This document shows, in pieces, positions 1,935-50,503 of a stretch of 64,000 nucleotides of DNA. The stretch is from positions 59,334,001-59,398,000 of the forward strand of contig NC_086379.1 in the NCBI RefSeq assembly GCF_036588685.1. The letters are read 5' to 3'. The translations under genes and the position numbers were made by a program. The DNA is from Mytilus trossulus. Lineage: Eukaryota. Each line of letters starts with the position of its first letter. Position 1 is the first letter of the stretch. Under the pieces are notes generated by a model, which made no database searches, was not told the DNA's origin, and saw only the letters and a program-made list of their open reading frames with translations.

Positions 1935-4900
1935 CTTCCATCTCATAAACACAAAATCTGTGTTGTTTAATTCTTCATAATCAAAAGAATCAGAGTTAAA
2001 ATTCTTGGCAAATGGATAAAAAGATAAAAACTTCCCCTGAAAGTATTAAGAAAATTACATGATTACGATATAAGAAGAAAAAATATGAAAAGACATAATT
2101 AGGTGCTGTAATTATATCAACACCTATTTCAAACAAGTACTGATCGAAAAGAAGTTTGAAAATGTTTTTAAACATTACGAAATTCGTAAAATTTAGATTT
2201 TTATAGCTATAAATATGTTACCATCATAAATTCTGAGTGTAACCCCAATTGTGTCATAGGTCAGATGGAAAATCCTGACTAAAAATAAACGTACTCTCAC
2301 TGGTCCGGACATATACCCCTGTTTGCCCATATTCTTCCATTCAATTTCCATCTGCGACATCGGTCACACGTGCACATCAAGTTTTACAGATTCAACAGAG
2401 AAGTGTTTAGTTTTTTGAATAGCTTAATTGCTTTTCATATATTGTGTATTTTATTGGAAATATATTCCCTTGTTTTATTTAAATTTCTAAACAAATTATT
2501 TGTGTTTTTTTGACTAAAGTAAATTTTATTATGGACTTTAATTTGAATAGTCCATACGTAAATATTCCTGGTTCGGACTATCTCTTAGAGGGGTCACTAC
2601 CTTTAGGTCCCCCCCAAACTACCAGTACATTGACCGGAGTTTCGACAACGGTGTCTGGTAATGCTACCTATCCGACCCTTTCACAAGGTTCGGCCATGCA
2701 TTTTGGGGGGTACCTACGTCAACTTCGGTGACTCATACTTTATCTAGGCCTGTTAATTCAGCGGGTACTATTAGTTCTGTCCCAGGTACAGCTATGGGCT
2801 TGAACTTGCCAGGTTCTAGACCCCCATTATCCTATTGTGGGTATATGCTTCCCAACACGGGCACACAACCTTTACCCTCATGGTCTCAGCCACCTTGGCC
2901 ACAGTCTTACCCTTATGGTGGGTTTATGCCAAACCAACCTGGTTTTTGGCCTTATAGGGACAATTTCTATGGTCCCCCTTCTGGGGTAGCTACTGCACCG
3001 CCTTTAGCTACTGCTCTACCCATAGCAGTATCTTTGACTCCTGCAGTAGCTCCTTCTACCACCGTACCTGACTCTCAAGCTCAATCTTCTAGTTCTTCTC
3101 ATGGTACTCAGGTTTCTGATCATGCATCACCTTTGGATGGTTTACAGAAGTTACTTTTGGACTTTGGTGAGTCTTTCAAGGCTGAATTTAGTACTCTATC
3201 CAGTCGTATGACTCTACTGGAGAATAGAGTTTCTTCTCATCAACCTTCTCCAGCTAAGTCTGTAGAATGTGATGAGAGGGAGGATGACGAGCTTTCTGTT
3301 TCCCCTGGGAGTCATGAAAGGGCTTTCCTCACTGATGAGGATGTTGAAAGTTCTTCTTCTCCCAAGGTATCGAAGACGGCCCCTGAGCCTTCTTCTAAGT
3401 CAGCTCAACAACCTCCCACCAAGGAGACTGAGGATCCTCCTTCCTTGAAGGATCTTAGGGATAAGGTGTATATCTTGATGAGGGATGAAGCACATATCCC
3501 TTTTGCCTCTCCTTCCAAGCCGAAGAAACCTTCTTCAACTTTTGAAGCTTACTGTGGTATTTCTCAGGATACTGTGACTTCTCACAATTCTTTTCCTGAA
3601 TCTGGCCATATGGCTTTTGCTTTACAATTTATTAATGAATGTATCGCTAATTCTGCTAGTGAAAAGGTTGCTAATAACAATATCTCTGGATTTGGAATGT
3701 CATCCTTTTCTGATCAGGTTAAGAACAAGGATTTTGATATCTTTGATTCTTCACTGGGTAGACTTGTTCCCAGTTGTGACAAATCTATGTCATCTTTATT
3801 GGGAAAAAAGCCAGTAGATGGTCTTCGTCTCACTCAACCTGTTTGGTCAAAGACTGAGAATCTCCTTCGTAGTGCTTCCTAAGTTCTTGGCACAGCCGAA
3901 CATTTTCTAGCTGCAACCGGACATTTGCTTAACAGCGAAGATTCGGTCGTTTCAGCAGAAGTACGATCTCCGGAAGGAGTGAAATCCATGCCTTCTCTAT
4001 TTCTGATGCTTGCCTTCGATTTAACAGGGATAAATCTTCTGTTACTCTTTTAATGGATCCTGCTTTTTTGGCAAAGAATCAGATTCCAGATAAGGGTGCA
4101 GAACCAGTTGTGATTCCTGCACTCCCTAGCGATTCTATTTCTGTACTTTTATGTCCAGTAAGAATCCTTTCTATTTATCTGGAAAGAACGTGTAGTTTAC
4201 GTTCTGTTTCTAACTCAAGACTCTTTATTCCTATTAAAAAAGGAATCTCAGATCTTTCTGTTAAAACTATTTCTACTTGGATATGCAAATGCATATCTTT
4301 AGCTTATGGTTCTTCTAAGGCAGAACTTTTAAATAGTTTTAATGTTAAAGCTCATGATGTTAGGGGTATCTCTACATCCTGGGCTCTGTTTAACAGTGCA
4401 TCTTTAGAAGAGGTACTGTCTGCAGGTTTCTGGAGAAATGAGAACTCTTTTATATCTCACTATCTCCAATCTATGGCTACTTTTGCCGAGAGTTTATACT
4501 CTCTTGGACCTATAGTTTCAGCACAAAGATTGAACTTTCCTCCTGTTTCTTCTGTTACAGGGGATTCAGCTTTACGTTAGATTCTGTTACTCAGAATTTA
4601 TGATGGTAACGTATTTATAGCTATAAAATATTCAAATTTTAAAGTAAATTTGGATTTTATTAGATAAATACTTACCATCATAAATTATAGGTCCCACCCA
4701 CCTCCCCTTCATCCCCTTTCCTTATGTTTCTGTCTTGAGGAAATTGAATGGAAGAATATGGGCAAACAGGGGTATATGTCCGGACCAGTGAGAGTACGTT
4801 TATTTTTAGTCGGGATTTTCCATCTGACCTATGACGCAATTGGGGTTACACTCAGAATTTATGATGGTAAGTATTTATCTAATAAAATCCAAATTTACTT

Positions 4901-7550
4901 TAAAATTTGAATATTTTCAATTCATTTTTAAAATGTTTGCATAAATGTGATTCAATTACAAGATAACAAAGCTAAATTTGTGAAAAGGCATAAGAATATT
5001 GCACATTGATGCATGCAAACCTTTTTGTTCGTTAAAATTCATTATAATTACAATAATTACCCAATGTTTTCTGTCGACTTCTTCATCAGCTTCCCATTTC
5101 CTGGTCAGAAATGGATGTTTCTTACTGATTATCTCCCCTTCAAAGAATGTTGTCAATGTTGGGTATTCCTCTGTTAGGCCGTTTATCTTCAAATAACCAC
5201 AAAGGTAAGAATTGTCCATATCAACATACTGAAAAGAAAAATAAGGTTAAATTTAAGGCTACATTAAATTCATGTAGTATTTTTGGTTGCTTAATCTAAA
5301 AGCTCTTAAAATGTTTTGTTTCGAAAAGTAGACTACAGGTTTTTCAGAATCTTTTGGCAAATATTGCTGTGTATGTACCTAAAAGTGTAAAGTACAGGCA
5401 GACCTGCAATGCTGTGGAAATATAGGCCATGGACTCACTATGGGTTAAAAAGAAAATAAAAAATTTGATTTTAATGTGAATTTTTGAAGTTCAGACTCCT
5501 ACCATGCCTACAAAAGATGCAATTAACTACAATAAATTGAGAATTTTTTTACAGATTTTGAAATTGATTCACATATAAAAGTAGCTGCGGTATCGTAGCT
5601 CTTTAGGTCCTTTTGTTATTTTTTGACTTTTTGCGGACTAATATAAAAGTTGAATTTGGGTAAATGAAAATTATATCCCTTTGGAAAATTTGTATGAAAT
5701 TTTATTTCTCACAAGTCATAATTTGGTAGTGAAATTCTATACTAATATGCAGACAAGGCAAATGAAATAACTTAATATTTTTGTGTAAACATTTTTCTGA
5801 TAAGTTTTCAATTCTAAATCAAAACTTTCAAAAGGAAAACATCTTTACAGCCTATTGCCCTTTAATATATTTAAGCTCAAACTTTGACAAACAATGTAGG
5901 TGTACAAAACCAAAGACTTGTCTATATACCCTATAATCGAGTCTTTATCAGGTTTGCAAATGAAAAATTCTAGTTAAAAATAAACAGAATGTGTTAAATA
6001 AGCTCAATCAGGCTTTAAAAGTCATCTCCCTAAAGAATTGCATTTCCAGACAACAGCTGTGAAGCACAAATTTAATTAAGAATATTACCATGGGAGACAA
6101 CTTTGCATTGTTTAAGTTTAAGTTGTATTATTGAGTTTATATGCCATAGTCAGATCAGGAAATATTAATAATGTTTCTCATATTAAAAGATTATTTTTTT
6201 TTTTAAATATTGATATTTGTTTTCTTTTAACTGGAATATTCACAATGGCCCGAATGGAATAATTAATACTGGTAATTATCGGCAATAAGAACATTTTCCC
6301 TTTGATCTTACTGGTATAACTGCCTAATATTTTCAATATCATGGACAGGACTTGATACTCGAAAAATATTAGGCAATGACGTCATGTATCAGTACAGTAA
6401 CGTCACATGTTCTTGTTCATTCGCTTCAATTTATCAATGAAATGCATGCAACTTCATTCATACAACCGAACAACGCACCCAACGTTTTGTACGCGTAAAA
6501 GTAGTTTTACTTATTATTTCAATTAACTTCATATTCTTTACAACAAAAACAGAGTTACGACAGATTGCCGATAAAAAGAATAATGGCATTTTATTTTTGA
6601 TACTGACTCCATCAGCTTGAATATCAGCTCTCCAGAGCAGGCTTGCTTGATATTCTGCTGATAAAGTCAGTATCAAAAACAAAAATGCCATTATTCTATA
6701 TGTATATATGAGGGGGGATAGGACCTTTATAGGGACTCCGGGATCAGGTGTTTTTATGCTCTGGATTTCAGGATTGACCCTTTCAGGATCCAGGAATTCT
6801 TTATTCAAGACCTCAGGATTCAGTGTGTTCAAACCTGGGATTGCGGGATCTGATGATATTAACCCCAGGATTTTGGGGTAAGGACCCCTCTTACCACTCC
6901 TCATATATGTATCTGAAACAAAATTGTCCTAACAATTATGACGTCTTGTCTTGACTTTAACTTTGAAGTGTTTAGTGTTTGTTTTTAACTATAATTTTTT
7001 TTTATTGTGATATCCAATGTCTATTCAAATTTCTTGCTAGATGTCTTCAAAGCTCCCTGTTGAAGGCCATACCTTGACCTTTAATCGTTAACATTTTACT
7101 TATACACCTTATCGCTATTCCTGCTTGACCTGAGAATCCGGCCTGCTTTTACTATTGACCTCATACAACAATCACTTTTCCATTGTGACGTCCGATATTT
7201 TGCATTATGTCTTTATCTGTTTATGACATCAATATTGTATGGGCACCTGTGCAACGTCCAGTAATGGCAGACAAATAGGGATGAAGTGTATTATGATTTG
7301 GAGTGAGAGTTGTTTCATTGGCACTCATACTGCAGCTTCTAAGTTCTTGCATGTCTATCTATAAACTTAAGAAAAGATTTACAGCAGAATTTACTATCAT
7401 TTTCGATACCTGTAAAATAACTTCTACATCATAGCAATTGCCTTTGCTTTTTTGGTGTCCCTGAAACCTTGATCCATTGTACAATAGACTGGTAGTTATT
7501 CCAGGGAGGTTGCTGTTCGCAGGAGGTGGTGGGTCAAGCTTTACCGGCAT
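1935..7550 (-). CDS. GID4: GID complex subunit 4 (Pro/N-degron recognin of the CTLH/GID E3 ligase); first three coding exons, 3' part off-window
   Basis: Exons 7550-7410 ([47 protein letters not shown]), 5228-5061 ([56 protein letters not shown]) and 2036-1935 ([34 protein letters not shown]). All have GT-AG phase-0 junctions. Very close to the human GID4 core as I recall it. Confidence 0.96.
2199..2349 (+). repeat. DIRS left inverted terminal repeat
   Basis: 2218-2349 is the reverse complement of 4739-4870 with 2 mismatches. The first ~40 nt are complementary to ICR 4589-4628. Confidence 0.95.
2531..3970 (+). pseudogene. DIRS ORF1 (gag-like), disrupted
   Basis: ATG at 2531; frameshift at the G-run 2705-2710; Pro/Ser-rich ORF 2728-3882; in-frame TAA at 3880-3882 followed by continued gag-like sequence ([16 protein letters not shown]) up to the deletion at about 3970. 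Confidence 0.75.
3969..4580 (+). pseudogene. DIRS tyrosine recombinase, C-terminal half
   Basis: Frame of ORF 4053-4580 extended upstream reads SGRSEIHAF...LCPVRIL...SRLFI...TISTWI...[12 protein letters not shown]...[13 protein letters not shown]. The HxxR and catalytic Tyr motifs are present. The N-terminal part and the first catalytic Arg (RxSE) appear lost at the deletion. Confidence 0.9.
4589..4686 (+). repeat. DIRS internal complementary region (ICR)
   Basis: 5' half is the reverse complement of the element's left end, 3' half is the reverse complement of the right end; the halves join through a shared AAAA at 4625-4628. Confidence 0.93.
4739..4917 (+). repeat. DIRS right ITR plus right extension
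   Basis: Inverted copy of the left ITR to 4870, then an extension 4871-4917 complementary to the ICR. Confidence 0.95.
6706..6906. mobile_element. Short MITE-like element with internal GGAT/CAGG repeats
   Basis: Termini ATATGAGGGGGGATAGG...CCACTCCTCATAT form imperfect inverted repeats in a TA-rich context. Explains ORF 6458-6904. Confidence 0.5.
7103..7291. mobile_element. MITE, TACACCTTATCGCTA family
   Basis: Same TIR and body (inverted) as copies at 26754-26919 and 27762-27900. Confidence 0.7.
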
Positions 7551-7671
7551 TGTTTTGGCATTCCTGTAAATTGTCCAAATGGACATTTCTTTTAATACCG
7601 GTGATTGGTCGGATTATTGTTTCCGGGTATCTCTAGCCAATCGCAGAAAGTTTTACATTTTCGTTTAAAAA
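7551..7671. promoter_or_regulatory. Compact bidirectional promoter GID4/ATPAF2
   Basis: Only 121 bp between the divergent ATGs; ATTGG 7604-7608 and CCAAT 7637-7641 in opposite orientations; ETS-like TTTCCGG near 7620; YY1-like AAAATGGC overlapping the ATPAF2 ATG. Confidence 0.75.
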
Positions 7672-10600
7672 ATGGCTGCGCCCATGAGAATTTATCATTC
7701 AGCTGTCAAAAGTTTCTTAAATGTATCAAATTCACATTGCACTTGTTCTGTGAGAAGATTCAACCCAAGAGGCATGTACATTTCAATGTCAAACAACACT
7801 GAATCCGGGTCCGTACGCCCTAATTCACGTTCGCCTTAGTACCTGTTCGCCCTGATACCTGTTCGCCCAGGGTCCATTCGCCCTGATTTTTATTTTTTAC
7901 TAATTGTTGTCTAGTCACTCTAGTGGCATAATTTTAAGTATTTGAATAAAATATGTTGAAGTTTGTTGAAAAAAATCACCGAATATTTATATTGCCGCAA
8001 TCAATTTCATCATTTTCCCTTTGATTGCAGTAGAATACTGGAATACAATGTATTTATCTTTGTTGATATTTGTTAACAAAATAATTGTATTCTGTCATTC
8101 ACTAATGTATGCAGTATCTGAGTGCAGTATAACTTAGACTAGTCTCAGAGTATTTTAATGAATGAACTTGTAAATCCGTTTAACAGTTCGTACATTTTTT
8201 TAAAATTAATTTCAAAAGCTGAATATATATTATCAAAACAAATTTGTTTTTTTATATTATAAATCCATCAAAAGACAGGTATCACAATAAGCAGTGATCC
8301 GAATTATTTTGTCATAAAACAATAAATTAATGATCCTTAACAAGCCATAAACTTTTAGATATTTCCATGTTTCCATAAATTTCAAGAATATATACCATCA
8401 TGACCATAGAATATATCTGATTAAGTTTATTCAACTTCAATGCCCTGAATATTAATATTTTTTAGTAGGGCCAACGGACTCTAAGGGCGAACGAATTCAG
8501 GGCAAAGGGACCCAGGGCGAACATGTTACTAGGGCGAACGGTCCCGATACCAACAACACTGACCATATGAAATCACAAGACACAATTAAAAAAAGAAAAT
8601 TAGCTACCCCCTTTTTAGAATATCAGTGTTTAAAACTGATAGTGTTATTAATATCTGTTTCTTTTTATTCATTATAATTACATTTGTTCTAACAAGCATC
8701 AGTTGTCTGAATTACGTTACCCTAGAGTACATTTTTATTTACAAACACTTAACCGTTAGCATTCCAATGGGAACCAAATGAGTTCCTTTTGTTGTTGATT
8801 TCATTGTTTCAAATAAATCGCTTGCCTATACCCAACCAGGTTGTATGGTCTCTTTCTATAAATACTATAGGGTGAAGTTTTAAGGAAAAAATTCCATGTA
8901 AATGTTTAACATGTTTAATTGAAGGTCATTGGAAATCTTAACATTTAATTTATTAATACTAAATTACTAAGAAGACATTTTAGGCCTCTGTGGCAGTCTT
9001 TCTGTTTCACAAGCTTGTTAATACTGTGAGTTTAATTCTAGAATATGACAGGTGAACTTGACTCCAATCTTAATTGACTAGGATTTTCTGCTTTCTTATC
9101 CAAGGTCATAGTTTTCACCAGACACTCTAACTTCCTCCAACAATAAAAACTGACCGCCATGACGTAAAACATTAGTGATGTAAGTGGTGTTAAAAACAAA
9201 ACAATCAATGAATCCATAATAGACAAATTTGGACAACATGGAATTTGCTGATTATCCTTGTTTTATAATAATCAATAATAGTACGTACTGTTTTTACAAA
9301 ACAAACAAAAATCAAGATCAATTGGTGGTCAGCTGTGGTTTGCTCTATGGTTGGGTTGTTGTCGCTTTGACACATTCCCCATTTCCTTTCTCAATGTTAT
9401 GTCATGAATGTGACAGGAAATTTTTTATTTAAAATACTTTCTTTCTTTTATTCAAATTTTGATAAAATATCATATAAAAAATAATGTATTTGGCCTTGAT
9501 CGGTTGATATGATATGTATATTGTATTTTTGGTCTAGCTATAAGATTCATTAATTTCTATGTACAGTATCTAGTTATATGTATTTTTTTTTTGGATTCAG
9601 AAGAAAATGTGCATTGATTGATAATTGATTTAAAGAATTTGCCAGAGTCTGTATTCGTATCACTAGAAAATTCACACTCCGTTTAAAACAAATTTAGATT
9701 AATGGTTTTCTTTTTACCTTTTACTACAACATCCACAAAAAATTTGTATTGTGCCATTGATTGATTGAAATTATATTGATACAGTATGTGTAGCATTAAC
9801 AACATTTTTCTTTTTTCTTTTTAGAGTTAAAGAAATTTTACAAGAATGCAACTATAAGTCAGACAAATGGTATTAATAATATTTGACAGTGGAAATAGCT
9901 TCATGTTATTGTACTGAAAACATTATAAAAAATATATGTTACTATTAACTAAACCAAATTGTCTTGTAATGTTAGAATAGAATTGTCAAAACTTTAAACT
10001 TAAAAGAATAAGCTTTAATTTTGTTTATTTTCAGAACAATACAATATGTTTAAAATAATAAGATGATGTGGTAATATTCAAATGAGACAAATCTCCACCA
10101 GAGACCAAATGACATAGAAGTTTACAACTATAGACTACTGGATAGCCTTAAGCATCAAGCAAAACCCATACTGCATATAGTCCACATTAAAAGGTCTTAC
10201 AATGTCAAATGTTAAACAATTCCAAAGAAAACTAACTACCTGATGTACAAAATAATGAACAAAAAACAAATATGATATACAGCAACAAAAGTGACCACTA
10301 AAATACTGGATCTTCTATTGGGACAGGTACATACAGAATGCATGTAAGAAAAACAACAAAGCTGGTTTTTTAGTTCAATGTGCTAGTGATTTCTTGTTAT
10401 TACTATCAGCATTTCATTTTAGAGTTTCAAATTATCGGTCCATTTTCTTGGACACTGCAGGCATTTTTGGTAATAGAAGACATTTTACAAAATATTTTGG
10501 ACATGAAGTTTTTTTATATTTACAATTACATGTACCAACTACTATCTCTTAAAAAATTTGGAAGTTTATCTGCTATAAAAAATATAATAAAATGTTCTGG

Positions 10601-13600
10601 AACATTTTTGTATCTCAGTAATCTTAAAGAGATCGTCTTTATATTCATTAAAAGTGCTTACATATTTACAAGACCAGATGTGACTGTTTTAATAGGTCAC
10701 ATTTCAATAAACTACATTGTACATGTATGTAAGTTCATACAATCAAAATCTACAAAATGTTATGACTTATGGTGTAAGTTTGCAAAGATAATTTTCCTTT
10801 GTCAATTGAAAGGTAACAGATTTGATGGCCTAGCAGTGTAAGGAATGCACTGTCTGGAAAAAATAAACGGCATAGTTGAACACTCATTATATTTGCCATC
10901 TTTATGTATTGCAGGGATAATTATTTGGCAGATCTTTGATACTAATCTATTAAAAAGCAACTCAGAAATATTTTGCAGATAGATGGCTGTAGAAAAAGTG
11001 ATGTTGGACTATTTAATGTATTTAAATGTTAATGCTGTACAACATTATTCATTTTTAATGTGACCACTTAGCAAGTGGGAAATATGAAGATTTTGTGATT
11101 TATTTTTAAAAAACTATTAGTCCTTACATAGTCATTCCACTGTACTAAATTATTAAGTTTTATCTTCATACTAATGATTATTTTTGGTTACTTGTTTTCT
11201 AGGCTGGTTTGAAATAAATTTAGACAAGAAAAAATTGAAGACGCCGAATGGAAAGGTTTTCCAAGTTCCAAATGAGGCACTGGCTTTAGCTGTAGCAACA
11301 GAATGGAATATGCAAGACAAAATAGTCAAGAGACATTACATGCATTTGGTAAGAGTACAGAAATAAGTATTGATGACATAGATAAATTTTTCACAATTAA
11401 AATGTAAGTACTGACTGGTGTTTAGATTGCTACATATCAATATTTTTCTCAAACCTTTATGGATTTTTATAAAAAATTTGCAAAAGGTGGTTTTTTTTAT
11501 GATTAAAAAATAATGTCCCAAGAAAAATTATAATAATATATTTTTACGAATTTTCAGTGTTGATCACTACTTTTTATGGATGTGATATACAGTGCTTTGT
11601 AACTCTAGATTATCTGATTTTTCATTTTTACATATGGTGCACTTCAGATTGGGCATTATTTTTCAAAACTGATCAAGAATTGAAACTTTGTTCTATATAT
11701 TTCAGACATCACTTTGTAATATGGCATTGGATAACCCTACATATAAATCAAGAGAAGACTTAGTTCGGAGTGCATTACATTATGCAGAGACAGACACACT
11801 GTGGCATGTTATAAACTTAATTATAAAGACCATTATGAAAATCTTTAGAATTGATGTCTATGTAATTCTATAAATACATGTACATTGTATATAAATTTTA
11901 AATTGTTTGTCTTGGATATGATATAAGTATGTGTACCTTCTGTCTGTACTGATTGAGTTGGTGCATACATTTTGGGTATTCTGTATGGATTTTTCAAATT
12001 GATAGTTTATCCTGTAATAAAATTGAGAATGGAAATGGGGAATTTGTCAAAGAGACAACAACCTGACCATAGAAAAACCAACAGCAGAAGGTCACAAACA
12101 GGTCTTCAATGTAGCGAGAAATTCCCACACCCGGAGAATATATTTATATGATAAATTTTCAGTTTGTTTTTTTTGGCACAAATTATCTCCCTTGACTAAA
12201 ATATGAACTTGAGGCACTTGTATTTCCAAGAAAATGATTTGGATTTAAAAAAAAATGAAACTAGCTTATCTTTTAAAACAAAATATAATCTTAAGTTAGT
12301 AATAAAGGTACAGATATATGCTCAGTTAACAGTGAATAACATAAAACTGACTATCTACTGAATGCAGATACTTCATTTTTTTTTAATTTTGTGAAAATTT
12401 TTTGTAGTTACAGATTGGATGAACCAGAAGATCTTGCAAAACTTGAGAAAGTCTGTTGGGATCCTATTCTTGAATGGGCAAGGAAAAGGTAGGCTGTATT
12501 ATAACCCAAAAAATATTCTACAAGAATACTAACAAAAGTCTCTGTTCTATGGTATTTCTTTTTTATACCTATTTAAATCAATATTTGTTGAAATATTTGC
12601 TCAAAAAGATATTACTCAAATTTTCATACCATCTCTAAAATATTGTTGTCATATAATGGCACTGCGATGTCATCATTTGGATTCCAGGCAATAACATGAG
12701 TATAAGTGTATGGTTATCTAACTGTATCACAAGGTTCCATACCTAGAAAGTTGTGGTGAATTTGGGGGGAGATGGCCTTCAACATTTAAGGATCAGGTGC
12801 CAAAAAAAAAGATTTATTTTCAGGTTTCCATACCTTGTACAAGTTCATACTGGTCCATAGAGTAATATTCAAGTTATTGCCTGGAAACCAGAAAATAAAT
12901 CTTTTTTTTGGCAACTGATCCCTAAATGTTTTAGGCCATATCCCCCAAAATTCACCACAACCTTCTAGGTAAAGGACGGTGAGAGTGACCCCAAATGTTT
13001 AAGAAGTTGGGCCCGAAAATGCCAAACACAATACTTTTCTATTCTTATACTTTGCTCATTTCTTTACCAATTTCATTGGGGTTTATTAAAAGTTTTGAAT
13101 TCTCTGAGTTCTTTAATATATTGAATGTAACTGTGTATTTAGATTTTGGATTTTTGGGCTCTGTTTTTAAATTGGTTCACTATATGTCCAAAATTAAACT
13201 AAGTTTGAAACTAGGATGAAGTGTTTTAATGATAGATGGTATGATGAAAGAATTATATATGTTTTTGTTAATAATTTGTAGATATGATATTGAAATAGAA
13301 TCCACCACTGGTTTATTACCACCCGAAGTGCCATCCAGTACATACAACAAATTAAGGAGACATTTATTATCTTATGGTGACTGGGCATTATTTGGTAAGT
13401 TATTTGTCTCAGTGGTCTGAAAACTATTGATTTTCACATATTGAAACTGAAAAAGTTATTAGTTATTATGAATATGCTAATTTATAAATCTATATTTCCG
13501 GCATCTTTTGTTTTAAGGTCGCCAATTAATTTTTTTTTAAAAACTCAAAATGGAAACTTAAAAGTGTAAAAGATTTTTTTACAATCATGCTAATTGTAAT

Positions 13601-15448
13601 AATATATGAATAAAAAGTGAAGTAGGTACAATGAGACAGCAACCCAACTAAAGTTAAACCATAAAAACATCTTGAAGTCACCATAGGGAATTGAACAAGA
13701 CAGTTGTCTATATAATGTCAAGTAACTTTGTCTGTATAATATCAAGTGACCTAGTCTATATAATATCAAGTGACTTTGTCTATATAATATCAAGTGACTT
13801 AGTCTATATAATATCAAGTGACTTAGTCTATATAATATCAAGTGACTTAGTCTATATAATATCAAGTGAATTATTCTATATAATATCAAGTGACTTAGTC
13901 TATATAATATCAAGTGACTTAGTCTATTTAATATCAAGTGACTTAGTCTATATAATATCAAGTGACTTAGTATATATAATATCAAGTGACTTAGTCTTTT
14001 TAATATCAAGTGACTTAGTCTATATAATATCAAGTGACTTAGTCTATATAAATTGTTAATTTACTTGGTTTTACTGTATGTTTTATCAGATTTCTGTGAG
14101 GCCATTAATTTATTCGCTAGATGGCACAAATTATTATTACTTTTATCAGTTTCATAAGAATGTACATCTCTTTAACACATACTGGATTCAAACTCAAAAT
14201 TTAAGCATTGACAAGCTAGTGATACAGTAGTTCAACTACTTAAATCACTCATTCCCTGAGGCCTCTGATACTGAATTAAAGACATATGTTTATATATATA
14301 TACAGGACACAAAGGACTGAAAGATTTTCTTTCTTGCAGGTTTTTTATATGGAACGGAAAACCTGAAATCATTAATTTTAATGTTAGCTGTGGTAGATAA
14401 ACACATAGATGTTAAAACAGCTGTAACTTTATCAAGGTTGGAACAAAATTATCAGGTTAGTATTACTGGAAGGCAAAGTATAGGCTGGGTTGGGTATTTA
14501 GATTTTCTTTTGTATTACTCTGCTTCTAACTGAACTGAAAACCTGATCTTGTCTACCTAATATTACCTTTTTCTACATTTGAAAATGTCTGTACCAAGTC
14601 AGGAATATGACAGTTCTTGTCAATTCGTTTTTGATGCGTTTTGCCATTTGATTCTGGACTTTCAGAATTGATTTTCCTCAAGTTCAGTATTTTTGTGATT
14701 TTACTTTTTACATGCAATCTTTGTGCTTATTTTTATTTGTTTATTTTGTTTATTATTGATTTACCTGTAGCATTTTCTTTCTCAACACTGAAAGAATGAT
14801 ATACATCAGAGAAAACAGTTTTTCTTCACTTGTTGAAAGCCCATCAAGTTTCAATTTCTAAAAAGAGAATGTTGTCTCTTTGATACATTCCCCATTTCAA
14901 TTCTCAATTTTATTTGATTGGAAACAAGAGCTTTATTCCTTTATCAAAAAAGGGTTGAATGTTAATAAATGGTTCTAGAACAATTAACAAGTTTTAAGAC
15001 AGGCTAGAATCACCCAAAACACAAAGAGAAAAGTTATTTTTTGGTGTTGACAAGAATCACAATAGTATGTAGTGTGTAGGAAATCTAGTAAACAAAATCA
15101 AGGAATTGACATTTTCTCTCATTTCTTGCTTGTATTACTGCATTATCAATATCCCTGAATGATATTTTTTTTTTTTAAAGTTATGCATCCTAAATTTTAG
15201 AATCTTTGTCTAGATGAATATTTTATAAAAGTATAAGCATCAAATCAATGTCATGTTACAAAATCTATAAACCTGATTGCCTTAATAAAATTTTCTTCTA
15301 TTTTCAGACAACAAAATGGGGTAATGTAGAGTGGTATCATGACCTTGACATTGAAGAGTTACACACCAGAGTAGCAGCAGCTGCATTGTTTATATATTGG
15401 TCTAGTGAATCATCATCAATTATACAGAAAACCGCTATTGAATTTTGA
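7672..15448 (+). CDS. ATPAF2: ATP synthase mitochondrial F1 complex assembly factor 2 (ATP12), about 279 aa
   Basis: Exons 7672-7771, 9825-9869, 11203-11348, 11706-11803, 12408-12488, 13282-13394, 14340-14455 and 15308-15448 splice in frame. Motifs KKFYKN, FEINLDKKKLKTP, ALAVATEW, TSLCNMALDNP, DTLCYR, SRLEQNYQTTKWGNVEWYHD. The N-terminus is basic and lacks acidic residues, like a mitochondrial presequence. Introns 1 and 4 need GC donors. Confidence 0.93.
7801..8551. mobile_element. Mutator-like non-autonomous DNA transposon, copy 1 (ATPAF2 intron 1)
   Basis: Imperfect TIRs with subterminal TTCGCCC/GGGCGAA repeats; 9-bp TSD AACAACACT at 7792-7800 and 8552-8560; homologous to 26925-27590. Confidence 0.8.
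13705..14050. repeat. 24-bp minisatellite (about 14 copies) in ATPAF2 intron 6
   Basis: Unit TCTATATAATATCAAGTGACTTAG; explains ORFs 13590-14033 and 13691-14059. Confidence 0.95.
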
Positions 15449-15531
15449 ATCAATAAAATCAAAATCAAAATGATAAAATAATCTTGTAATTGCAAAAGTT
15501 GTCAAAAAACTGTTTCAATCAATAGTTCTTA

Positions 15532-15810: not shown

Positions 15811-15989
15811 TTATAAAGTTGATTTAAATTAAGGTTTTTCAAATCTGAACAAGCTGTTGGTACTCTCAGAATTTACTTAGGTGTCTTTTTTTGTTGGATG
15901 TATGGCTAAACTGTAACTTAAGGTCTGTGTTTTTCGTTAGATGTTTTCTGCTTTAAATCAATCTGATGAGTTAAGCCCTTTTCAACAGA

Positions 15990-26919: not shown

Positions 26920-26924
26920 ACTGC

Positions 26925-37700: not shown

Positions 37701-40700
37701 CCCGTTTTCAAATTGGTCTACATTAAGGTCCAAAGGGTCCAAAATTAAACTTAGTTTGATTTTAACAAAAATTGAAACCTTGGGGTTCTTTGATATGCTG
37801 AATCTAAATATGTACTTAGATTTTTGATTATTGGCCCAGTTTTCAAGTTGGCCCAAATCCAGGTCCAAAATTAAACATTGTTTGATTTCATCAAAAATTG
37901 AATACCTGGGGTTCTTTGATATGCCAAATCTAACTGTGTATGTCGATTCTTAATTTTTGGTCCAGTTTTAAAATTGGTCTAAATTAAAGTGCAAAGGGTC
38001 CAAAATTAAACTAAGTTTGATTTTAACAAAAATTAAATTCTTGGGCCTCTTTGATATGCTGAATCTAAACATGTACTTAGATTTTTGATTATGGGCCCAG
38101 TTTTCAAGTTGGTCCAAATCAGGATCTAAAATTATTATATTAAGTATTGTGCAATAGCAAGTCTTTTCACAGTATTGTGCAATGGCAAGAAATATCTAAT
38201 TTCACAATATTGTGAAATAGCAATTTTTTTTTTAATTAAGAGTTATCTTCCTTTGTCCAGTATAGTAAGTAAGAAATATCTGCAAGAATTTTTTTTAATT
38301 GGAGTTATCTTTCTTTGTCCAGAATCAACTTAAATCTTTGTTATATACAATATACAATGTATATTCACTTTTTACTACCAACTGATAAATTTAAATAATC
38401 TTTACCATTCAGTGATAACAAGCAGTTTTTTTACATCTTAATATTTTATGATGTATTTAAATGAGTAGTAAGTGTTGCAAACTCCATTAGAATATTTTAA
38501 TTGAAATTAGTTTTGGAATAAAGGAAAGGGGGATGTGATTAACAAATTGGGTTCAATTTTTCTCATTTGAAATTTCATAAATAAAAAGAAAATTTCTTCA
38601 AACATTTTTTTGAGAGGATTAATATTCAACAGCATAGTGAATTGCTCTAAGAGAAAACAAAAATTTTAAGTTCATTTGAATACATTCATTCTGTGTCAGA
38701 AACCTATGCTGTGTCAACTATTTAATCACAATCCAAATTTAGAGCGGAATCCAGCTTGAATGTTGTGTCCATACTTGCCCCAACTGTTCAGGGTTCAACC
38801 TCTGCGGTCGTATAAAGCTACGCCCTGCGGAGCATCTGGTTGTCATGTGTGTTGCAGTGCGTTTCAAATTTGACAGTAAACATTATTTAACTTTTCAAAA
38901 TGCTGTTAAAAGTTTAAATGTGCCCACATCTCCTTGTATTCATTTGATAGCATCTTAATGAGACATATATCGTTCAGCATACTGTTTGGTTCTTATAAAT
39001 GATAATTTTTCCATGCAGATGAAATATGTTGTAAGAGAAGAAATTCAGGTTTGGTTTGTTTGAATTGTTGTTGATGCATGTATCTTATTAGTAAAAATCT
39101 ATCAGCTCTTTTATCCCAAAACAACGATTGAAAGTAGTCCCTTTCCGTTTTCTATTCGTCTTGTTTGGTGTCGATCTCTACCATAGGTTCAATAAATAAT
39201 ATTGGAAAGTTTAAAAAAAAAAAAAGAATAATAAAATCTAGGATAGAAAACATTCAAGGTACTAGAAATTTTTGACTACTTGATCTTTTCTTTGACAATA
39301 AAGTTGTAAATTTTGGCTGAGTTTATATGTGCTACCATGAAGGAAAGTTTTAATGGTGGGTAACAATCTATCATTAGGGCTGTTCCAGAAAATACTATGT
39401 CCCCTCCAGGGACGGCACTTTTTTTTAACCCCCACCACCCACAGAAATAAAATTAAATTAGAACAGCACTCCCTTTGCATTTTGGTATTTCAAATACAAC
39501 CACCCACATAATATTTAAAAAAATTGCCTTCCCTGGGGGGGACATAGTATTTTCTGGAACAGCCCTTATGACATTCATTTATAGGATAGAAAACATACTG
39601 AGATTTGAAATTTGAAGCTGATGATCAATATGTAAATAATAGATATTTGTAGTAACAACTGAAAAAAAAATGTCCCCAAGCTTGCAAGATTTGTGATACA
39701 TCTTATTGAATATTGTTATTTGTTAGTGAAAGTTGCATGTTATGCTTCATACATTTCATGGTTTCATACAACAAATCTGTAGGAATGTTATTTGTGAGTG
39801 AAAAAAAGCATGTGCAGGTTAAAACTTTTTTTTTCATTTGAAATTTATAATTTTATTTGTATCAGGGGGGAGTTTACATTTGTAACTTTATACATTTAGG
39901 AGTCAATAATGTATTTTAAGCTTGTGAAGACAGACATAGAATGGGTTATTATTGAAGAAATTCAGGAATTCAAAATGGTTAATTGAATTGTATGCTCTGG
40001 TTGTACATTGTATGTTCTGGTTGTACATTGTATTGTGCTTAATCCACAAAGTCTACTTTAAGATGTTATATAAAGCTTCAAAGAATTTTATCAACTTGTA
40101 ATATTTTAATTTCAGAATACGTGTATATCATTTAAACTCAGTCGTCTAAATATGTTTTTCTTTCTTTCTATGAAATGTTTATGTCAAATCATACAAAATT
40201 ACAGGAGCAAATATATTTGAAGAAAAAACTAGTAAATAGACAAAAACACAATCGCTTTAAGAACTTTTAAAAGAAACTAAATTGTGTATGGGCATTTATA
40301 GCTGATTATATTTACATCATTCTTTGTAACTGTTTGTAGGACCAACCACCACAAATGGCGCAAATACCAGTAGTGCCAGCAGGTCCCATTAATCCAACTA
40401 CTGAACAAATGGCAAAGTTAAAAAGTGAACTAACTGTTGTCAACGCAAATATTAAAGTAATGGGAGACATGTTAACAGAACTTGATCCATCAAGTGTAGA
40501 TCCATCAGATTTAGAATTACTACAGGTAACTAATTATATGATGTGTAACTTCTGCATGTAATGCATAGACCTTGTAAAAAGACTTAATCCATTCAGTATA
40601 AATCAGTCAAATAAAGGGAGATTTTACTCTGTATTTGCTTTCAAAATGCAAGTGCATTCTATTGTCATGCGCTGTCAAAAGAAGAGACCAATAATGCTTT

Positions 40701-43700
40701 CTGGTTGTGCATCTAAAATAAGATTGAGAATGAAAATGGGTAATGTATCAAAGAGACAACAGCCCGACCATAGAAAAAAAAAACAGCAGAAGGTCACCAA
40801 CAGGTCTTCAATGTAACAAGAAATTCATGCACCCGGAGCCGTCCTTCAGCCAGCCCCTAAACAAATATATACTAGTTCAGTGATAATGAATGTCATACTA
40901 AATTCCAAATTGTACACAAGAAAGTAAAATTAAAATAATACAAGACTAACAAAGACCAGAGGCTCCTGACAGACGCAAAAATGCGGCGGGGTTAAACATG
41001 TTTATGAGATCTCAACCCATCCCCTATACCTACTACTATAAGAAACTAAAATTAAAATAATACAAGACTAACTATCTGTATATAAGTCTGTCCATCCATC
41101 CATCTTGATAAAAAAAAAGTTAAATTTTGGTGCAAGGTTGTTTATGATAAAGATTTTTAAAAGTAGACTTTGGTAAATATTTTGTTGTGAGAACAAATAT
41201 CGTGTTTAAAATCAGTAAAATAATTTTAACAAATGTTTACTACAGCTATATTTTATGATTTTGTAAACATCCAGTATTTATAAGAAGAAAACATTCACAA
41301 CCAAAGTTGTCACAAAATTATTTTTAACAATAAAGGTCAGCATATAGACATCTCAATCTGATTTGTGTGTCTGGATGATACCAGAACTGATTGAATGCTA
41401 TGCAATTGGAATTAAAGACTCCAATATTGAAGTCATAGTCAATTTTTTAATGGTAAATAATGCTAGTTTAGCTCATTTTGGACACCAGTAGTCCAGTACA
41501 CCCCTTATTAAATATGGACATACATGATATCCATATTATCAGTGGAATGACTAATTAAATACTAAATAGTATATTTTATTGTTTCCTTGCAGGAATTGAA
41601 TCGTACAAACAGACAAATGCAGCAAAGATTAGTAGATTTATTAGATAAAATAGCAAATGAAGAAGTTACTAGTAAGTTAAATACTGTTAACAAACTTAAT
41701 TTCCTGGATACAGTTTTTGCATTAACCTGACCTGTAATCTAAATCTAACCTTGGACTGTGATGTCACAGAAAATCATTCAAACAAATTAAAAATTAGTTC
41801 AAAAGGGAGGGGGACTCATCAGATCAGTACATAGCACAAACATAACTAACAAAAGGACAATAGACACAAAGCACACGTTTATGAGTACTCAAAGTTACCA
41901 AAAGCTAGTTCAAGTCCATTTTCTAAATAATAGATAAACCATGGTTTCCCCTAACTAAAATGTCAATCAATATCTAATGGATTTAATGTTAAGACAGACA
42001 GACTGAAAAAAAACATAGTTTAAGCACTAAGTTTTTGTCCTTTATATTTCAGATGAACTTCTGAGAGTGAATGATGATATAAATAATGTATTTTTACGGT
42101 ATGAAAGATTTGAACGTTATAGAACTGGCCAATCACAAACAGACCTGAAAAAATTAGATACACCAACTACAGAACCAGTTATGTCTCCACCTTCATATAA
42201 TCAGGTAAGATCTAATTAGTATTTGAACCTATTATACACTCTCTTGTTATGTGTGGGATATACTGAAATCACTCTGTCCATCTGTTGGTCCAACAAATAT
42301 AGTTTTTTTTGCAGTCGGAGAAACTATGATGTCATATTTAGTCAGCAGCAGGACAGTGATAAGTTGTATAATGTCAGATACCTACTTTTTGTTTTCCCAT
42401 TCTTTGAATTTTCAATATGTTGAATGATCAGTCTCTGATATTATTGAACAGAATGTCTTCAAATAAGGGCAGCAGTTTAACAGTGATAGGTTGAAAGGTG
42501 TTTCTTGTGAGGCCTGATTACCAATACTTTGAATATTTTTTTTCGTCAGGGTATACTAAAGCATTACAACCAGTCCTTTCCTGTTTTAAACATACTGTTA
42601 TTCTTAATATAGATAATTTTTCATTTGGATTTTTTTACCAGAATCTCATTTGGTAGGCAGGAAACACCTATATGTATAATATTTCTCAGAGGTGATTGAA
42701 TGATTACAGTGCATTCAGTTATAAAATATTATACAGTATGTATTAGGCATCTTTTAAATGACCAGAATTTTTATTTTTTAGGTAGAAGATGCATCAAATC
42801 CACCTATTGCTAATCTGATAGATCTGGGAGACGATGGAATGGTACAGGCACCTGGTCACTTACCACCTATAAATACACAGATGCAGAATATGAGTAAGTT
42901 TACTGCCTATAGATCATAAGTCATATGTTGTTTTTTTACTCACTGTAAGTCAAAATGATGGTATTTAGCGATGCTGATTCATTCAATGATGATTTAACTT
43001 CTAGTGGTTGAAATTATAAAAAAGAAGATGTGGTATCATTGCCAATGAGACAATTATCCACAAAAGACCAAAATGACACAAACATTAACAATTATAGGTC
43101 ACTGTACGGCTTTCAACAATGAGCAAAGCCCATACCGCATATAGTCAGCTATAAAAGGCCCTGATAAGACAATGTAAAACAATTCAAGCTAGAAAACTAA
43201 CAGCCTTATTTATTTTTAAAAAATGAACGAAAAACAAATATGTAACACATAAACAAACGACAACCACTGAATTACAGGCTCCTGACTTGGGACAGAGTTT
43301 AGTAGAATGTATGTTGTGTCTATTTGTTTTCTTTAATACTAAGCTGACTCTTAATCAAGTTTATTCATAAGTATGATTTGTTATACCCCCGCTTTAAAAA
43401 AGGGGGGGTATACTGTTTTACCTCTGTCTGTCCGTCCGTCAGTCCGTCCGTCAGTCAGTCCGTCCCATGAAACTTTCGTCACATTTTTCTCAGGAACTAC
43501 AATACAAGGATTTCTGAAATTTGGTTTCAGGGTTTATCTAAGTCAGCTATACTGTGTGATGCATTTTCAGATTGATCACTTGACAACTTCCTGTTTACCG
43601 AACACTTGTATGATTTTACACATGATAGCCAAGTTGAAAATTTTCGTTACATTTTTCTCAGGAACTACAATTCAAGGATTTCTGAAATTTGGTTTCAGGG

Positions 43701-46700
43701 TTTATCAAAGTCAGCTATACCGTGTGATGCGTTTTCAGATTGATCACTTGACAACTTTCTGTTTACCGAACACTTGTATGAATTTACACATGATAGCCAA
43801 GTTGAAAATTTTCGTCACATTTTTCTCAGGAACTACAATACAAGGATTTCTGAAATTTGGTTTCAGGATTTATATAAGTCAGCTATACCGTGTGATGCGT
43901 TTTCAGATTCATCACTCGACAACTTCCTGTTTACCGAACACTTGTATCATGTTACACATGATAGCCAAGTTGAAAATTTTCGTCACATTTTTCTCAGGAA
44001 CTACAATACAAGGATTTCTGAAATTTGGTTTCAGGATTTATATAAGTCAGCTATACCGTGTAATGCGTTTTCAGATTCATCACTTGACATCTTCCTGTTT
44101 ACCGAACACTTGCATATTTTTACACTATTAATATTATCCACTTGCGGCGGGGGTATCATCAGTGAGCAGTAGCTCGCAGTTTCACTTGTTATTATTATTT
44201 CAACAAAATAAAAATTTGATTGTCACATAATAAGATTAAGTGCTATCTGATATTCCTTTATAAATATATAGTGACATGGGTTAAAAAGGAAAATAGACTT
44301 TTATTTTGTTTTATTGAAACTTTTTGGAATATATGTTGTTTTGTGAATGACATAGATTGATTCTATGAGTGGTTATATTATTTTCAAACTGACTTTTCTT
44401 GGTACCTTGTATGAACTAAGGTTGTTGTCTCTTTGAAATATTCCCCATTTCCATTCTCAATTTTATTGATTATTTTGAATTAACCTATTACTTTACTTCA
44501 GACATTGGTTCCAATACTACACCCAAACAAAGTGATGATTTTGACATGTTTGCTCAATCACGACAATCTTTTGAACAGAATAAAGTCAAAACACAAGGGT
44601 AAGCTATTTCAATGGTATTCAGATATATTCTTGAAGTTATATTTAGAAAAATACAACAAATTGATTTTAAGAAATGAAATCTTTCATGTTAGTTACTCAT
44701 TAAAAACTACTTATAGTGTTCACAAACAAATTACATGAATTTAGTGATTGAAAATAGTCTTTCTTTGCCGAGTTGAGTTAACTTTCATTAAAAAAACATA
44801 TATGAAGCACCAAAAAGGTAATTGGTTAAGAGGTCTTCAATATCGTAAAGAACATCATATTTCACTGAAAACAGTTCATGCATCTAAATGTATTATGAAT
44901 GTTCTATGTATGTTACAGTGCATATGCTAACCAACAAGAGGACCAGTTTACTGGTGGTGGGTTAGGCCAGGCTGTCGCTGCCAAATCAGGGGTAATTATT
45001 TTATACATATTGTAAAAAGTTCATATTAATATTATTTTTAATTTTAAAGCTAATTGTTATATTTATCATATTATATCTAGCACAATCTCACAATCAGCAG
45101 ATTATCCTCAGATGAAAACAAATTTTGAAGGCTTCAATGAAAGTTCAAATAACCATTGATGACTATCCCTTAAGCATTATTGATTATTCAGGTAAATCAG
45201 ATTTTCCATGAGTAATCAATTAGAATATATAAAAGAAAAATATTCAGTGCCATACAGTTTTTCATTACTTTGTTAAAAACAAAATTCAAAAAAATTTCAT
45301 ATGAAAATTCAATATATACAACGTTCTAAAATATGTATTACAAATAGAACTCATCTAAGTTTTGGATACCAAACTAAGAATCTCTTTTTACTCATTCCTA
45401 ATTTTTATGACATTGAAACAAGCAACAACCAATCCAATATTTTTTTTTATAAAACTTAAAAATATTAGGTTTATATTTATATTTATGTTATAAAAAAAAA
45501 TGCTTCGCAAAGACAGCAATTCCCTGGCAAACTTCACTGTTCAATTAACATTCTGTGGATTCATTAATTCAGTGGAAACCAATTGACATGGATTTAGAAA
45601 AAAAATGTATTTTTGTTGATATTTGATTTCATGGAAGTAACAAAGTTAGAAATTTCTACTTTGTTATCTTTACCCTCAAAATCTACAAATAAAGGGATCC
45701 AAAGAATAATAATCAATCCACAGAAGTTGTATAAATATTAAACTTTAACTGATACAAGTCTATTGAACTGACAAACTTAAATGGTGGATGGTGCTATTTT
45801 AAGTGATCTCTAATCATATGATTATCATGTGATCTTGATTATAACAGGCCTCAGAGGAGGAGACATTACAGGTAACATTCAGAGTTCTCTCTCTTATCTG
45901 TCATTCACATAATCAGTTAGACTATCTTTAAGTTTGCATGTAGGGAGACAATCACAACTCTTAGATAATTTATTAAATTTAGATAAATGATGGCTGAATA
46001 TAATTATTGTTTCCACTACAACTTTTAGACCAGTAAATTAATTACATATACATGTATATAAAGAAAAATAAGGGGGCTGGAATAGCAGTTTCAAGCCATA
46101 TCTATGTCTTAACTAAGGATCTTTTAAACCAATGCTTTTCAAATTTTATTATATTGTTACTGATGAAAAAAAATGAGGTATGGTTCATTAGTGAAGATTT
46201 TCAGTTTTGTCTTTTATCAGAAATAAACTAGATATGGCTAATACATTTGAAAGAGCCATACTGTTACCAGCTTCTTAGTGGATTCAAACTGTGAAATAAA
46301 TTGATTTTTGTCACAAAATTTCACAAAAGTTTCATAGATATACCAAATTCAGTCATCTTAAAGTTATCTGAGATTGTTGTTATGGAATGGTTATAGAACC
46401 ACACTGCTTGTTACAATGCTTGTTGCTGATGGTTTATATATCAACAGGAGCTTAAAAGTTGCAAGTTAATAAGACAGTTTTTTTTCTAACCCAAATAAAT
46501 CAAAAACACCACTTTTTTTCTTTCAAAACTGCAAATAATTTTCTATATTTTCTGTTATTTCACTATTAAACTTTCTGACTTTTGTGTAACTCCATTATAA
46601 TTCTTTTAGATTTTTTTCACTCCACTGAAATACTTTTAGACTAACTGTAGTACTTTATATAACAAATGTATCTGCATTTTGTGACAAGTCACATGTACAC

Positions 46701-49700: not shown

Positions 49701-50503
49701 ATTCTATTTGCAGCTTGAAAAATACAAGAATCCACAAGACCAGCTGTCAAGTTCAGGTTGGTAAAGAATATAATGAAACATTTTGTGAAAAGCTTATCCA
49801 GTAGTGAAAAGCCATTTTGATAATGTATAAGTTATAAGTTTCAATATTAACAATCAGTCGACCCTCTTATTCTATTATGCAATACTTATTTAAAACTGTA
49901 ACAACTGGATAATATACTTTGTTTTTGAAGGGAAAGATAAGGATACAAACATTCATTTAATGTTGCCTTATATTTGTTAATTGTTAATTCAGAAATATTG
50001 TCAATGTTTTATTATTGGGAAAATTGTGACAGTAGAAGGTAAGAAAAAATGAAAACTCATTTTGTATTTTTATGGCATTATCAGTGATGCAGGATTTCCT
50101 AAAATTGCAGTAAAAAACTGATAATAAAGTCAAACAGACTAAATGTTCATGACAATTTAATAAGACCCCCTGTACTGGCATCAATATTTTAATAATATTG
50201 GGGCCAGTACAGGGTGTCCCAATTATCTGTTCTGAAAATTTAGTCTTTTTTACTTCAGAATTTGAATTTCACTGCAATTTGCTGATTGTAGCATATAGTA
50301 AGAATACTCTATAGATATACCTACTGTATAACCCTATAGTAAATGTTTTATTAAATATTTCAGAATTTGACCAGTTCTTGGCAGAAAGGTCAACAGGAGC
50401 TAATTCAGTACCAACCATTGCTGCAGCTGCAGGTCAAAGGTCGGGAAGTCGAAATCGTCAACTACAGAAAGACGAGGAAGAGAATCCATTATTTGCATTG
50501 TAA
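28737..50503 (+). CDS. TOM1L2: TOM1-family VHS-GAT endosomal adaptor (TOM1/TOM1L2 orthologue), about 520-535 aa
   Basis: Exons 28737-28794, 30940-31024, 32441-32525, 33932-34078, 35579-35713, 36304-36360, (39019-39048), 40340-40525, 41593-41671, 42053-42204, 42782-42893, 44502-44598, 44919-44991, (45848-45871), (47144-47176), 48768-48833, 49714-49756 and 50364-50503. VHS ([33 protein letters not shown]); GAT ([19 protein letters not shown]); clathrin box LIDLG; DDFDMFAQ; EMEQWL; [12 protein letters not shown]; C-terminal LFAL. Bracketed microexons are tentative. Confidence 0.92.
29085..29590 (-). mobile_element. Probable tRNA-derived SINE
   Basis: Minus-strand head GGGTTCATGGTCTAGTGGTTAAG...CCCGGGTTCGATT has Pol III A- and B-box-like motifs but no complete cloverleaf; the 3' boundary is approximate. 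Confidence 0.5.
34189..34840 (+). mobile_element. HINE/DINE-1-like element with 3 internal 168-bp units (TOM1L2 intron 4)
   Basis: 5' subTIR/hairpin TATACCCCCGCTTTAAAAAAGGGGGGTATA; (GTCC/GTCA)n microsatellite; 168-bp tandem units; 3' subTIR GCGGGGGTAT; hairpin GTGAGCAGTAGCTCAC; TT flanks. Confidence 0.85.
36897..38841 (+). mobile_element. HINE-like element with two internal tandem arrays
   Basis: subTIRs TTTATACGACCGCA / TGCGGTCGTATAAA; (GTC)n microsatellite; ~160-bp units x4 then ~130-bp units x4; short 3' terminal segment. Decayed relative at about 12660-13210. Confidence 0.8.
39377..39565. mobile_element. PIF/Harbinger-type MITE
   Basis: TIR GGGCTGTTCCAGAAAATACTATGTCCCC; TTA TSD at 39374-39376 and 39566-39568. 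Confidence 0.85.
40718..41070. repeat. Second abundant dispersed repeat (AATAAAATTGAGAATGGAAATGGGGAA...AAAGAGACAAC); other copies near 12015-12137 and, inverted, near 9320-9395, 14870-14912, 21060-21191 and 44420-44465
   Basis: Multiple recognisable copies on both strands; class not determined. Confidence 0.7.
43020..43293. repeat. Abundant dispersed repeat (AGAAGATGTGGTA...GCCAATGAGAC...); other copies near 10060-10340, 31870-32220 and 33690-33880
   Basis: Four recognisable diverged copies within the window; class not determined. Confidence 0.7.
43381..44190 (+). mobile_element. HINE/DINE-1-like element with 4 internal 168-bp units (later TOM1L2 intron)
   Basis: Same termini and units as 34189-34840; explains the 252-aa ORF with 56-aa repeats. 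Confidence 0.85.
48405..48723. repeat. Long imperfect inverted repeat (about 133-bp arms, about 53-nt loop)
   Basis: 48405-48537 is the approximate reverse complement of 48591-48723. Confidence 0.85.
49121..49335 (+). mobile_element. Short HINE-like element
   Basis: TTTTATGCCCCACCTAC...AGAGGGGCAT hairpin; GTCC/GTTC microsatellite; subTIR GTGGGGCAT; 3' end CATTCTTGTT. Confidence 0.65.

Follow-up and report, generated by a model that had tools for sequence, protein, structure and literature searches.

The window analyzed here, a 64-kb stretch of the Mytilus trossulus genome (C7:59334001-59398000, C7 being a chromosome-scale contig of a 1.3-Gb assembly of 541 contigs), carries four genes in the order GID4 (minus strand), ATPAF2 (plus), DRC3 (minus) and a TOM1-family gene (plus), all with intact exon sets. 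The sequence is AT-rich (~31% G+C), with long introns and many repeats; stop-to-stop frames were read, and exons were searched singly against Pfam, solved structures and proteins. From GID4 to TOM1 the block spans ~53 kb with no intervening gene, and its members represent four unrelated families that are not paralogues of one another. A search of the 1.3-Gb assembly returned a single copy of each of the four. A preliminary description of this DNA had proposed two head-to-head pairs joined tail to tail, and the exon-level domain and structure matches bear out this arrangement (Table 1).

Identity of the four genes

Exon 2 of GID4 matched the Pfam family Vac_ImportDeg (E=4e-21), and its best solved structure was that of human GID4, residues 145-206 (1.7e-32). 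Position 1935, from which the preliminary description counted the block, is the limit of the last exon visible in the window, with exons 4 and 5 lying beyond the left edge. Similarly, an ATPAF2 exon matched the Pfam family ATP12 (E=6e-16). The ten coding exons of DRC3, when joined, give an open frame with 96% identity to the DRC3 protein of Mytilus californianus (P0224), and single exons are 95-97% identical to the same protein. One of the introns (22013-22385), picked by a splice model, has AT-AC ends of the minor-spliceosome type. The last DRC3 exon matched the DRC3 chains of axoneme structures (1.9e-25), and its relatives among 1.84 billion representatives carry the DRC3 name in vertebrates, molluscs, flatworms, a barnacle, insects and Seison. 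Orthologues were also found in Nematostella, Branchiostoma, Saccoglossus, Antedon, Lingula, Owenia, Dimorphilus, Lineus and Styela, with further ones in Lottia, barnacle, ant, Seison and flukes.

For the fourth gene, the VHS exon best matched TOM1 (9.5e-12), ahead of GGA and TOM1L1, and TOM1 was also the best match of a GAT exon (2.9e-11). A whole-genome search with the Pfam GAT model returned zero matches because the domain is divided among exons; the exon-level search did succeed. Since only one TOM1-family copy is present, vertebrate TOM1, TOM1L1 and TOM1L2 share this gene as their single pro-orthologue. The preliminary label of TOM1L2 was therefore correct as to the family and the stop at 50503, but not as to TOM1L2 specifically.

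Table 1. Positions of genes, exons, promoters and repeats, numbered from the first letter of the window
Feature	Position	Strand	Remarks
GID4, part within window	1935-7586	-	Pfam and structure matches
GID4 exon 1	7586-7410	-	ATG 7586, second in-frame ATG 7553
GID4 exon 2	~5227-5061	-	
GID4 exon 3	2037-1935	-	
GID4 exon 4, left of window	-2009 to -2140	-	Coding
GID4 exon 5, left of window	~-2934 to -2995	-	Coding
GID4/ATPAF2 bidirectional promoter core (predicted)	7587-7671	.	85 bp between start codons
ATPAF2 (ATP12 family)	7672-15448	+	Internal exon borders approximate
ATPAF2 exon 1	7672-7749	+	ATG 7672
ATPAF2 exon 2	~9824-9869	+	Encodes KKFYKN... near 9830
ATPAF2 middle exons, within open reading frames	11178-11363, 11673-11870, 12340-12489, 13220-13417, 14321-14530	+	
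ATPAF2 last exon, within open reading frame	15218-15445	+	Followed by stop 15446-15448
ATPAF2/DRC3 3'-3' spacer	15449-19369	.	~3.5 kb, repeats, no gene
DRC3 coding region	19370-26371	-	Ten coding exons, 26349 to 19373; ATG-bearing exon reaches 26371
DRC3 coding exons 1-5	26349-26172, 25609-25493, 25029-24863, 23959-23813, 23317-23117	-	
DRC3 coding exons 6-10	22483-22386, 22012-21838, 21442-21311, 20657-20463, 19621-19373	-	
DRC3 intron in the 5' untranslated region (UTR)	26372-28435	-	2,064 nt, GT..AG; joint 26371->28436 in runs X1 and X8
DRC3 non-coding first exon	28436-28532	-	Minimum extent; contigs of runs X8 and X1
DRC3/TOM1 bidirectional promoter (predicted)	28533-28729	.	RNA contigs and motifs
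TOM1-family gene	28730-50503	+	Stop 50501-50503
TOM1 exon 1	Starts at or before 28730, ends 28793	+	ATG 28737
TOM1 exon 2	30939-31024	+	
TOM1 exon 3	~32437-32520	+	
TOM1 VHS exon	Start 33932	+	
TOM1 GAT exons, in open reading frames	40340-40558, 41566-41727, 42031-42216	+	
DIRS-like transposon remnant	2199-4917		GID4 intron 2; terminal repeats, tyrosine-recombinase-like open reading frame 3933-4577
Inverted repeat (50-nt) resembling a miniature inverted-repeat transposable element	15526-15816		ATPAF2/DRC3 spacer
147-bp tandem repeat, ~12 copies	~16370-18100		ATPAF2/DRC3 spacer

Two predicted compact divergent promoters

The start codons of GID4 and ATPAF2 (7586 and 7672) lie 85 bp apart, or 118 bp with the second GID4 ATG. 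Between them are two opposed CCAAT boxes (ATTGG at 7605-7609 and CCAAT at 7634-7638) and an ETS-type TTTCCGG at 7620, while a YY1-like AAAATGGCTGC overlaps the ATPAF2 ATG (7669-7679). The same AAAATGGCTGC opens TOM1 (28734-28744), with both proteins beginning Met-Ala-Ala and the start codon of each lying within the YY1-like motif.

The start codons of DRC3 and TOM1 are 2,387 bp apart, and this gap alone would not point to a common promoter. Assembled RNA contigs from four runs (four studies, two organism codes) were placed on 25400-31100, where spliced junctions identify them as RNA. These contigs confirmed the DRC3 intron at 25610-26171 and joined TOM1 exon 1 (...28730-28793) to 30939-31024 and then to the next coding exon, defining an intron at 28794-30938. 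They also placed a non-coding first exon of DRC3 at 28436-28532, separated from the coding region by a 5'-UTR intron. Given this exon, and a first TOM1 exon that begins at or before 28730, the start of DRC3 lies within ~200 bp of TOM1 exon 1. The interval between them contains TTTCCGG at 28540 and CTTCCG at ~28559 and, upstream of TOM1 exon 1, a TATA-type TATAAATA at 28692 and a perfect palindrome of the cAMP response element, TGACGTCA, at 28710; a YY1-like AAATGGCG at 28509 falls inside the DRC3 non-coding exon. A strict RFX X-box, the motif of cilium genes, was not found near the DRC3 start, and a loose match at 29182, within a repeat, is unconvincing.

The ETS/GABP, NF-Y CCAAT and YY1 motifs were identified as consensus matches, and by this measure the motif types usual for bidirectional promoters are present. 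TTTCCGG occurs three times in the 64 kb, twice at the two promoters, and three of the five occurrences of AAATGGC[GT] are likewise at promoters. Measured between start codons or minimum exon extents, the starts of each head-to-head pair are separated by less than the 1 kb that defines bidirectional-promoter pairs. Collectively, the short gap between GID4 and ATPAF2 and the RNA contigs at DRC3/TOM1 agree with the two compact bidirectional promoters that had been predicted.

Repeat DNA fills the ~2 kb that separates the DRC3 ATG from the non-coding first exon. DRC3 has taken up these insertions as a UTR intron while its start stayed beside TOM1, and the retention of the start despite ~2 kb of inserted repeats argues that the shared promoter is the thing that has been kept. 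One contig contains a joint from 26371 to 28730 with minus-strand GT..AG ends and runs on into TOM1 exons, a tentative sign that transcription of DRC3 sometimes begins within TOM1 exon 1 or past it, overlapping it in antisense.

A short interspersed repeat family containing GGTCCGTTCGCCCTGAT is present near both promoters and elsewhere (7806-7880, 26925-26990, 8456-8674 and 27468-27686). RNA-contig coverage at 26737-28264 is very deep and multi-copy, and this family is therefore either transcribed or contained within many transcripts.

The convergent ATPAF2/DRC3 junction

ATPAF2 and DRC3 meet at their 3' ends across a spacer flanked by poly(A) signals, an AATAAA at 15452, 4 nt past the ATPAF2 stop, and a minus-strand DRC3 signal at 19067. 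No conserved open reading frame was found in the spacer, and no Rfam family or tRNA anywhere in the window. The spacer DNA is lineage-specific filler in which nothing seen suggests a functional element.

As a rough illustration, we assumed a hazard of random breakage that lets ~3% of 20-kb spacers survive. At this hazard a 3.5-kb spacer survives about half the time and a sub-kilobase spacer nearly always. The preliminary description had raised an additional constraint on the convergent junction, for which we find no indication in a spacer that is short and holds only repeats; because its small size may be enough to explain the junction, such a constraint is possible but not required.

Comparison with the mammalian 17p11.2 region

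The published mouse order reads Rai1, Srebf1, Tom1l2, Lrrc48 (Drc3), Atpaf2, 4933439F18Rik (Gid4), Drg2, Myo15, Alkbh5, Llgl1, Flii (PMC2990707), and a study of human cells places these genes at 17p11.2 (PMC5527106). The mussel order matches the Tom1l2-Lrrc48-Atpaf2-Gid4 part of the mammalian one; the absence of an intervening gene was established here for mussel and is taken from the published order for mouse and human (PMC2990707). In human, ATPAF2 and C17orf39 (GID4) are divergent with a distance of 256 bp between transcription start sites (PMC3815023 Table S1), and the pair is kept head to head in human, chicken and Fugu (PMC1487180). The match to human 17p11.2 that had been claimed at the outset thus stands for gene order and for the divergence of GID4 and ATPAF2. 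The mussel strands were read directly; for human DRC3 and TOM1L2 the matching orientation is probable.

By our own estimate, a randomly ordered genome would contain a given quartet in set order and orientation with a probability of ~2/N^3 x 1/8, and the expected number of chance matches over all human quartets is ~1e-9 genome-wide. Because so few chance matches are expected, common descent is the sole reasonable reading of the four-gene match, and by parsimony from mussel and vertebrates we infer that the block is ancestral to Bilateria. TOM1L2, and not TOM1 or TOM1L1, is the vertebrate paralogue that has kept the ancestral neighborhood.

The wider linkage group on C7

DRG2 had been suggested to lie just left of the window, but no GTPase gene is present in the 37 kb left of GID4. 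Genome-wide, the DRG-specific Pfam domain was found at C8:78.03 Mb, on C65 and at C7:76.43 Mb. The C8 locus best matched yeast Rbg1 (DRG1 type), whereas the C7 locus, ~17 Mb from the block, marginally best matched Rbg2 (DRG2 type). Other families of the 17p11.2 region were also located on C7: MED9 at 44.59 Mb, LLGL at 62.28 Mb (best match LLGL1/2), TOP3A-type at 64.08 Mb (91 vs 42 bits for TOP3B) and SHMT1-type at 72.35 Mb (222 vs 204 bits). PEMT is on C5. The paralogue calls for DRG2 and SHMT1 are weakly discriminated. Overall, five of the six other 17p11.2 families tested lie on C7, 3-17 Mb away (P ~7e-6, with C7 comprising 6.6% of the assembly), and a gene with two MyTH4 domains at C7:64.72-64.75 Mb may be MYO15. 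These results indicate that the block sits in an anciently linked region, the gene order of which has been shuffled across ~30 Mb apart from the four genes, which remain within 53 kb.

The DRG match on C65 (198464-199670) is an identical copy of the DRG1-type exons at C8:78035134-78038051 and is probably an uncollapsed haplotig. An intron-less, full-length SHMT frame on a small contig (C340:17136-18267) looks bacterial and may represent a contaminant or symbiont contig.

Origin and maintenance of the block

Based on the data presented above, we consider it probable that the four genes constitute a microsyntenic block of 53 kb that goes back to the ancestor of protostomes and deuterostomes and consists of two promoter-driven divergent pairs placed tail to tail over a gene-free spacer. 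Neither shared promoter could be split without harm to two genes at once, and breakpoints there would be removed by selection. The convergent junction would survive mainly as a very small target, a break in which would also put both 3' ends at risk, and slow rearrangement in both lineages would contribute to the persistence of the whole.

Several points weigh against this interpretation. Simple co-regulation is not obvious for a cilium gene, DRC3, paired with a trafficking gene of broad expression, TOM1. The compact two-way promoter between GID4 and ATPAF2 is a prediction from sequence, the RNA contigs covering the other promoter, and assembled contigs cannot show transcription start sites, so that the start positions of DRC3 and TOM1 are to be read as minimum exon extents. 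The overlap of their 5' ends comes from one contig of one run with 30 nt on one side of the joint. The small-target argument for the convergent junction is a back-of-envelope estimate, and the lineages compared are two, mussel and vertebrates. On the human side, the matching strands of DRC3 and TOM1L2 and a tight 3'-3' junction are presumed, and the TOM1L2/LRRC48 pair was not found in the list of human divergent pairs consulted (PMC3815023 Table S1).

Alternatively, the block could be a neutral survivor, ancestral and never under selection, that has remained unbroken since its three intergenic targets are tiny (~0.1 kb, ~3.5 kb and ~0.2 kb) and both lineages are slow. That short spacers are general in conserved pairs (PMC3514665), and that the convergent spacer showed no sign of conservation or function, is consistent with this possibility. 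However, the flanks have been thoroughly scrambled, with DRG2, LLGL, TOP3A, SHMT1 and MED9 now 3-17 Mb off, and the persistence of the DRC3 start at the TOM1 promoter despite 2 kb of repeats looks like promoter maintenance rather than mere non-breakage, and we regard neutral survival as unlikely.

We are similarly doubtful that an extra constraint acts on the ATPAF2/DRC3 junction through regulatory elements in neighboring introns, a shared chromatin domain or interplay of the 3' ends. It would account for the retention of all three junctions in two very distant lineages, and chromatin contacts in human cells do tie intronic regions of TOM1L2 and ATPAF2 (PMC5527106); the antisense overlap of DRC3 and TOM1 suggested by one contig might be taken in the same direction. 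In contrast, the mussel spacer consists of lineage-specific repeats, the block lacks a developmental regulator gene, and the search around the DRC3 start gave no cilium motif of the X-box type. The further proposal that the four genes form one constrained regulatory unit, in which one pair depends on elements or transcripts of the other and the ATPAF2/DRC3 junction has itself been selected across Bilateria, strikes us as rather improbable, and the same low expectation applies to the forms that it might take, such as antisense DRC3/TOM1 5' ends or enhancers in TOM1 and ATPAF2 introns serving their neighbors. Finally, an artefact of misassembly, vertebrate contamination or look-alike paralogues is effectively refuted by the AT-rich sequence with mussel-type introns and repeats, the 96% identity of DRC3 to a Mytilus protein, the single copy of each gene in the assembly and the confirmation of splice junctions by independent RNA runs.

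Relation to known conserved neighborhoods

Ancient microsynteny consists mainly of conserved head-to-head pairs with short spacers; nearly 600 conserved pairs are known, most of them 5'-5' (PMC3514665). These conserved ancestral microsyntenic pairs (CAMPs; Irimia et al. 2012, PMC3514665), exemplified by HSPE1-HSPD1, consist of unrelated genes adjacent since pre-bilaterian times, mostly arranged 5'-5', separated by short spacers and sharing a bidirectional promoter. Of the three junctions in the mussel block, two are of the CAMP type but, unlike CAMP pairs, the block chains two pairs through a 3'-3' junction into a run of four genes. The vertebrate C17orf39/ATPAF2 pair comprises the same genes in the same divergent orientation, with a very short spacer as in mussel (Li et al. 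2006, PMC1487180). The published cases are limited to human, chicken and Fugu, and the mussel locus adds a protostome, DRC3 and TOM1.

The Smith-Magenis synteny group of vertebrates has the same order in mouse and human and is kept in amphibians and birds (PMC2990707, PMC3787675), but it comprises dozens of genes over megabases, whereas mussel keeps four contiguous genes with the rest scattered on the same chromosome. A block classed as 'Bilateria novel' (block 3064: GID4, DRG2, MYO15A, ALKBH5, LLGL1) is listed in the partial text of supplementary file 4 of Robert et al. 2022 (PMC8851819). As given there, it shares GID4, the 17p11.2 region and a bilaterian age with the mussel block but runs from GID4 in the opposite direction, where mussel is broken, with the DRG2-type locus 17 Mb and LLGL 2.9 Mb away. 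ATPAF2, DRC3 and TOM1L2 do not appear in this partial text, an absence that carries no meaning. The mussel block also differs from genomic regulatory blocks, which are built around a developmental regulator with conserved non-coding elements placed in bystander genes nearby: its four genes include no developmental transcription factor and no signalling gene.

Our literature search did not find the four-gene block named as conserved microsynteny. The class of conserved head-to-head pairs has been known since 2012, and the GID4/ATPAF2 pair was already known in vertebrates; what the mussel locus adds is modest, namely a chain of four genes shared between protostomes and deuterostomes and the detail of the DRC3 UTR intron. 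The locus is a clean example of the persistence of an ancient neighborhood, with two divergent pairs held in 53 kb of a linkage group otherwise shuffled over ~30 Mb. It opens no new question, the conservation of head-to-head pairs across animals having been established since 2012.

Repeats and neighboring genes

The DIRS-like remnant in GID4 intron 2 is not part of the conserved unit. A GID4 intron also holds ~2.5 kb of a satellite with a 31-bp unit (cattgtayattgtgtgattataaKaatc...), which covers 1-1555 of the window and continues to the left (L009:9039-10000). Two TOM1 introns contain the same tandem element, with a ~190-bp unit and a long open frame (34188-34778 and 43355-44128).

To the right of TOM1 lie a LINE (long interspersed nuclear element) remnant, tandem GST genes and a STAMBP-like gene, none of which is a 17p11.2 gene. 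The LINE-type remnant, with degenerate reverse-transcriptase and endonuclease sequence, occupies 53500-56400 on the minus strand downstream of TOM1. It is followed by a ~9.1-kb tandem duplication with near-identical GST genes (61150-64000 of the window and right-flank piece L013:6287-9182), after which the STAMBP/AMSH-like gene is found on the minus strand (right-flank piece L014:5139-9387). To the left of GID4 are a Ser-rich open frame of 391 aa (left-flank piece L012:6533-7705) and two tandem small membrane-protein-like frames with MNGNETDSSVQYFRR (L011:236-607 and 2077-2367).

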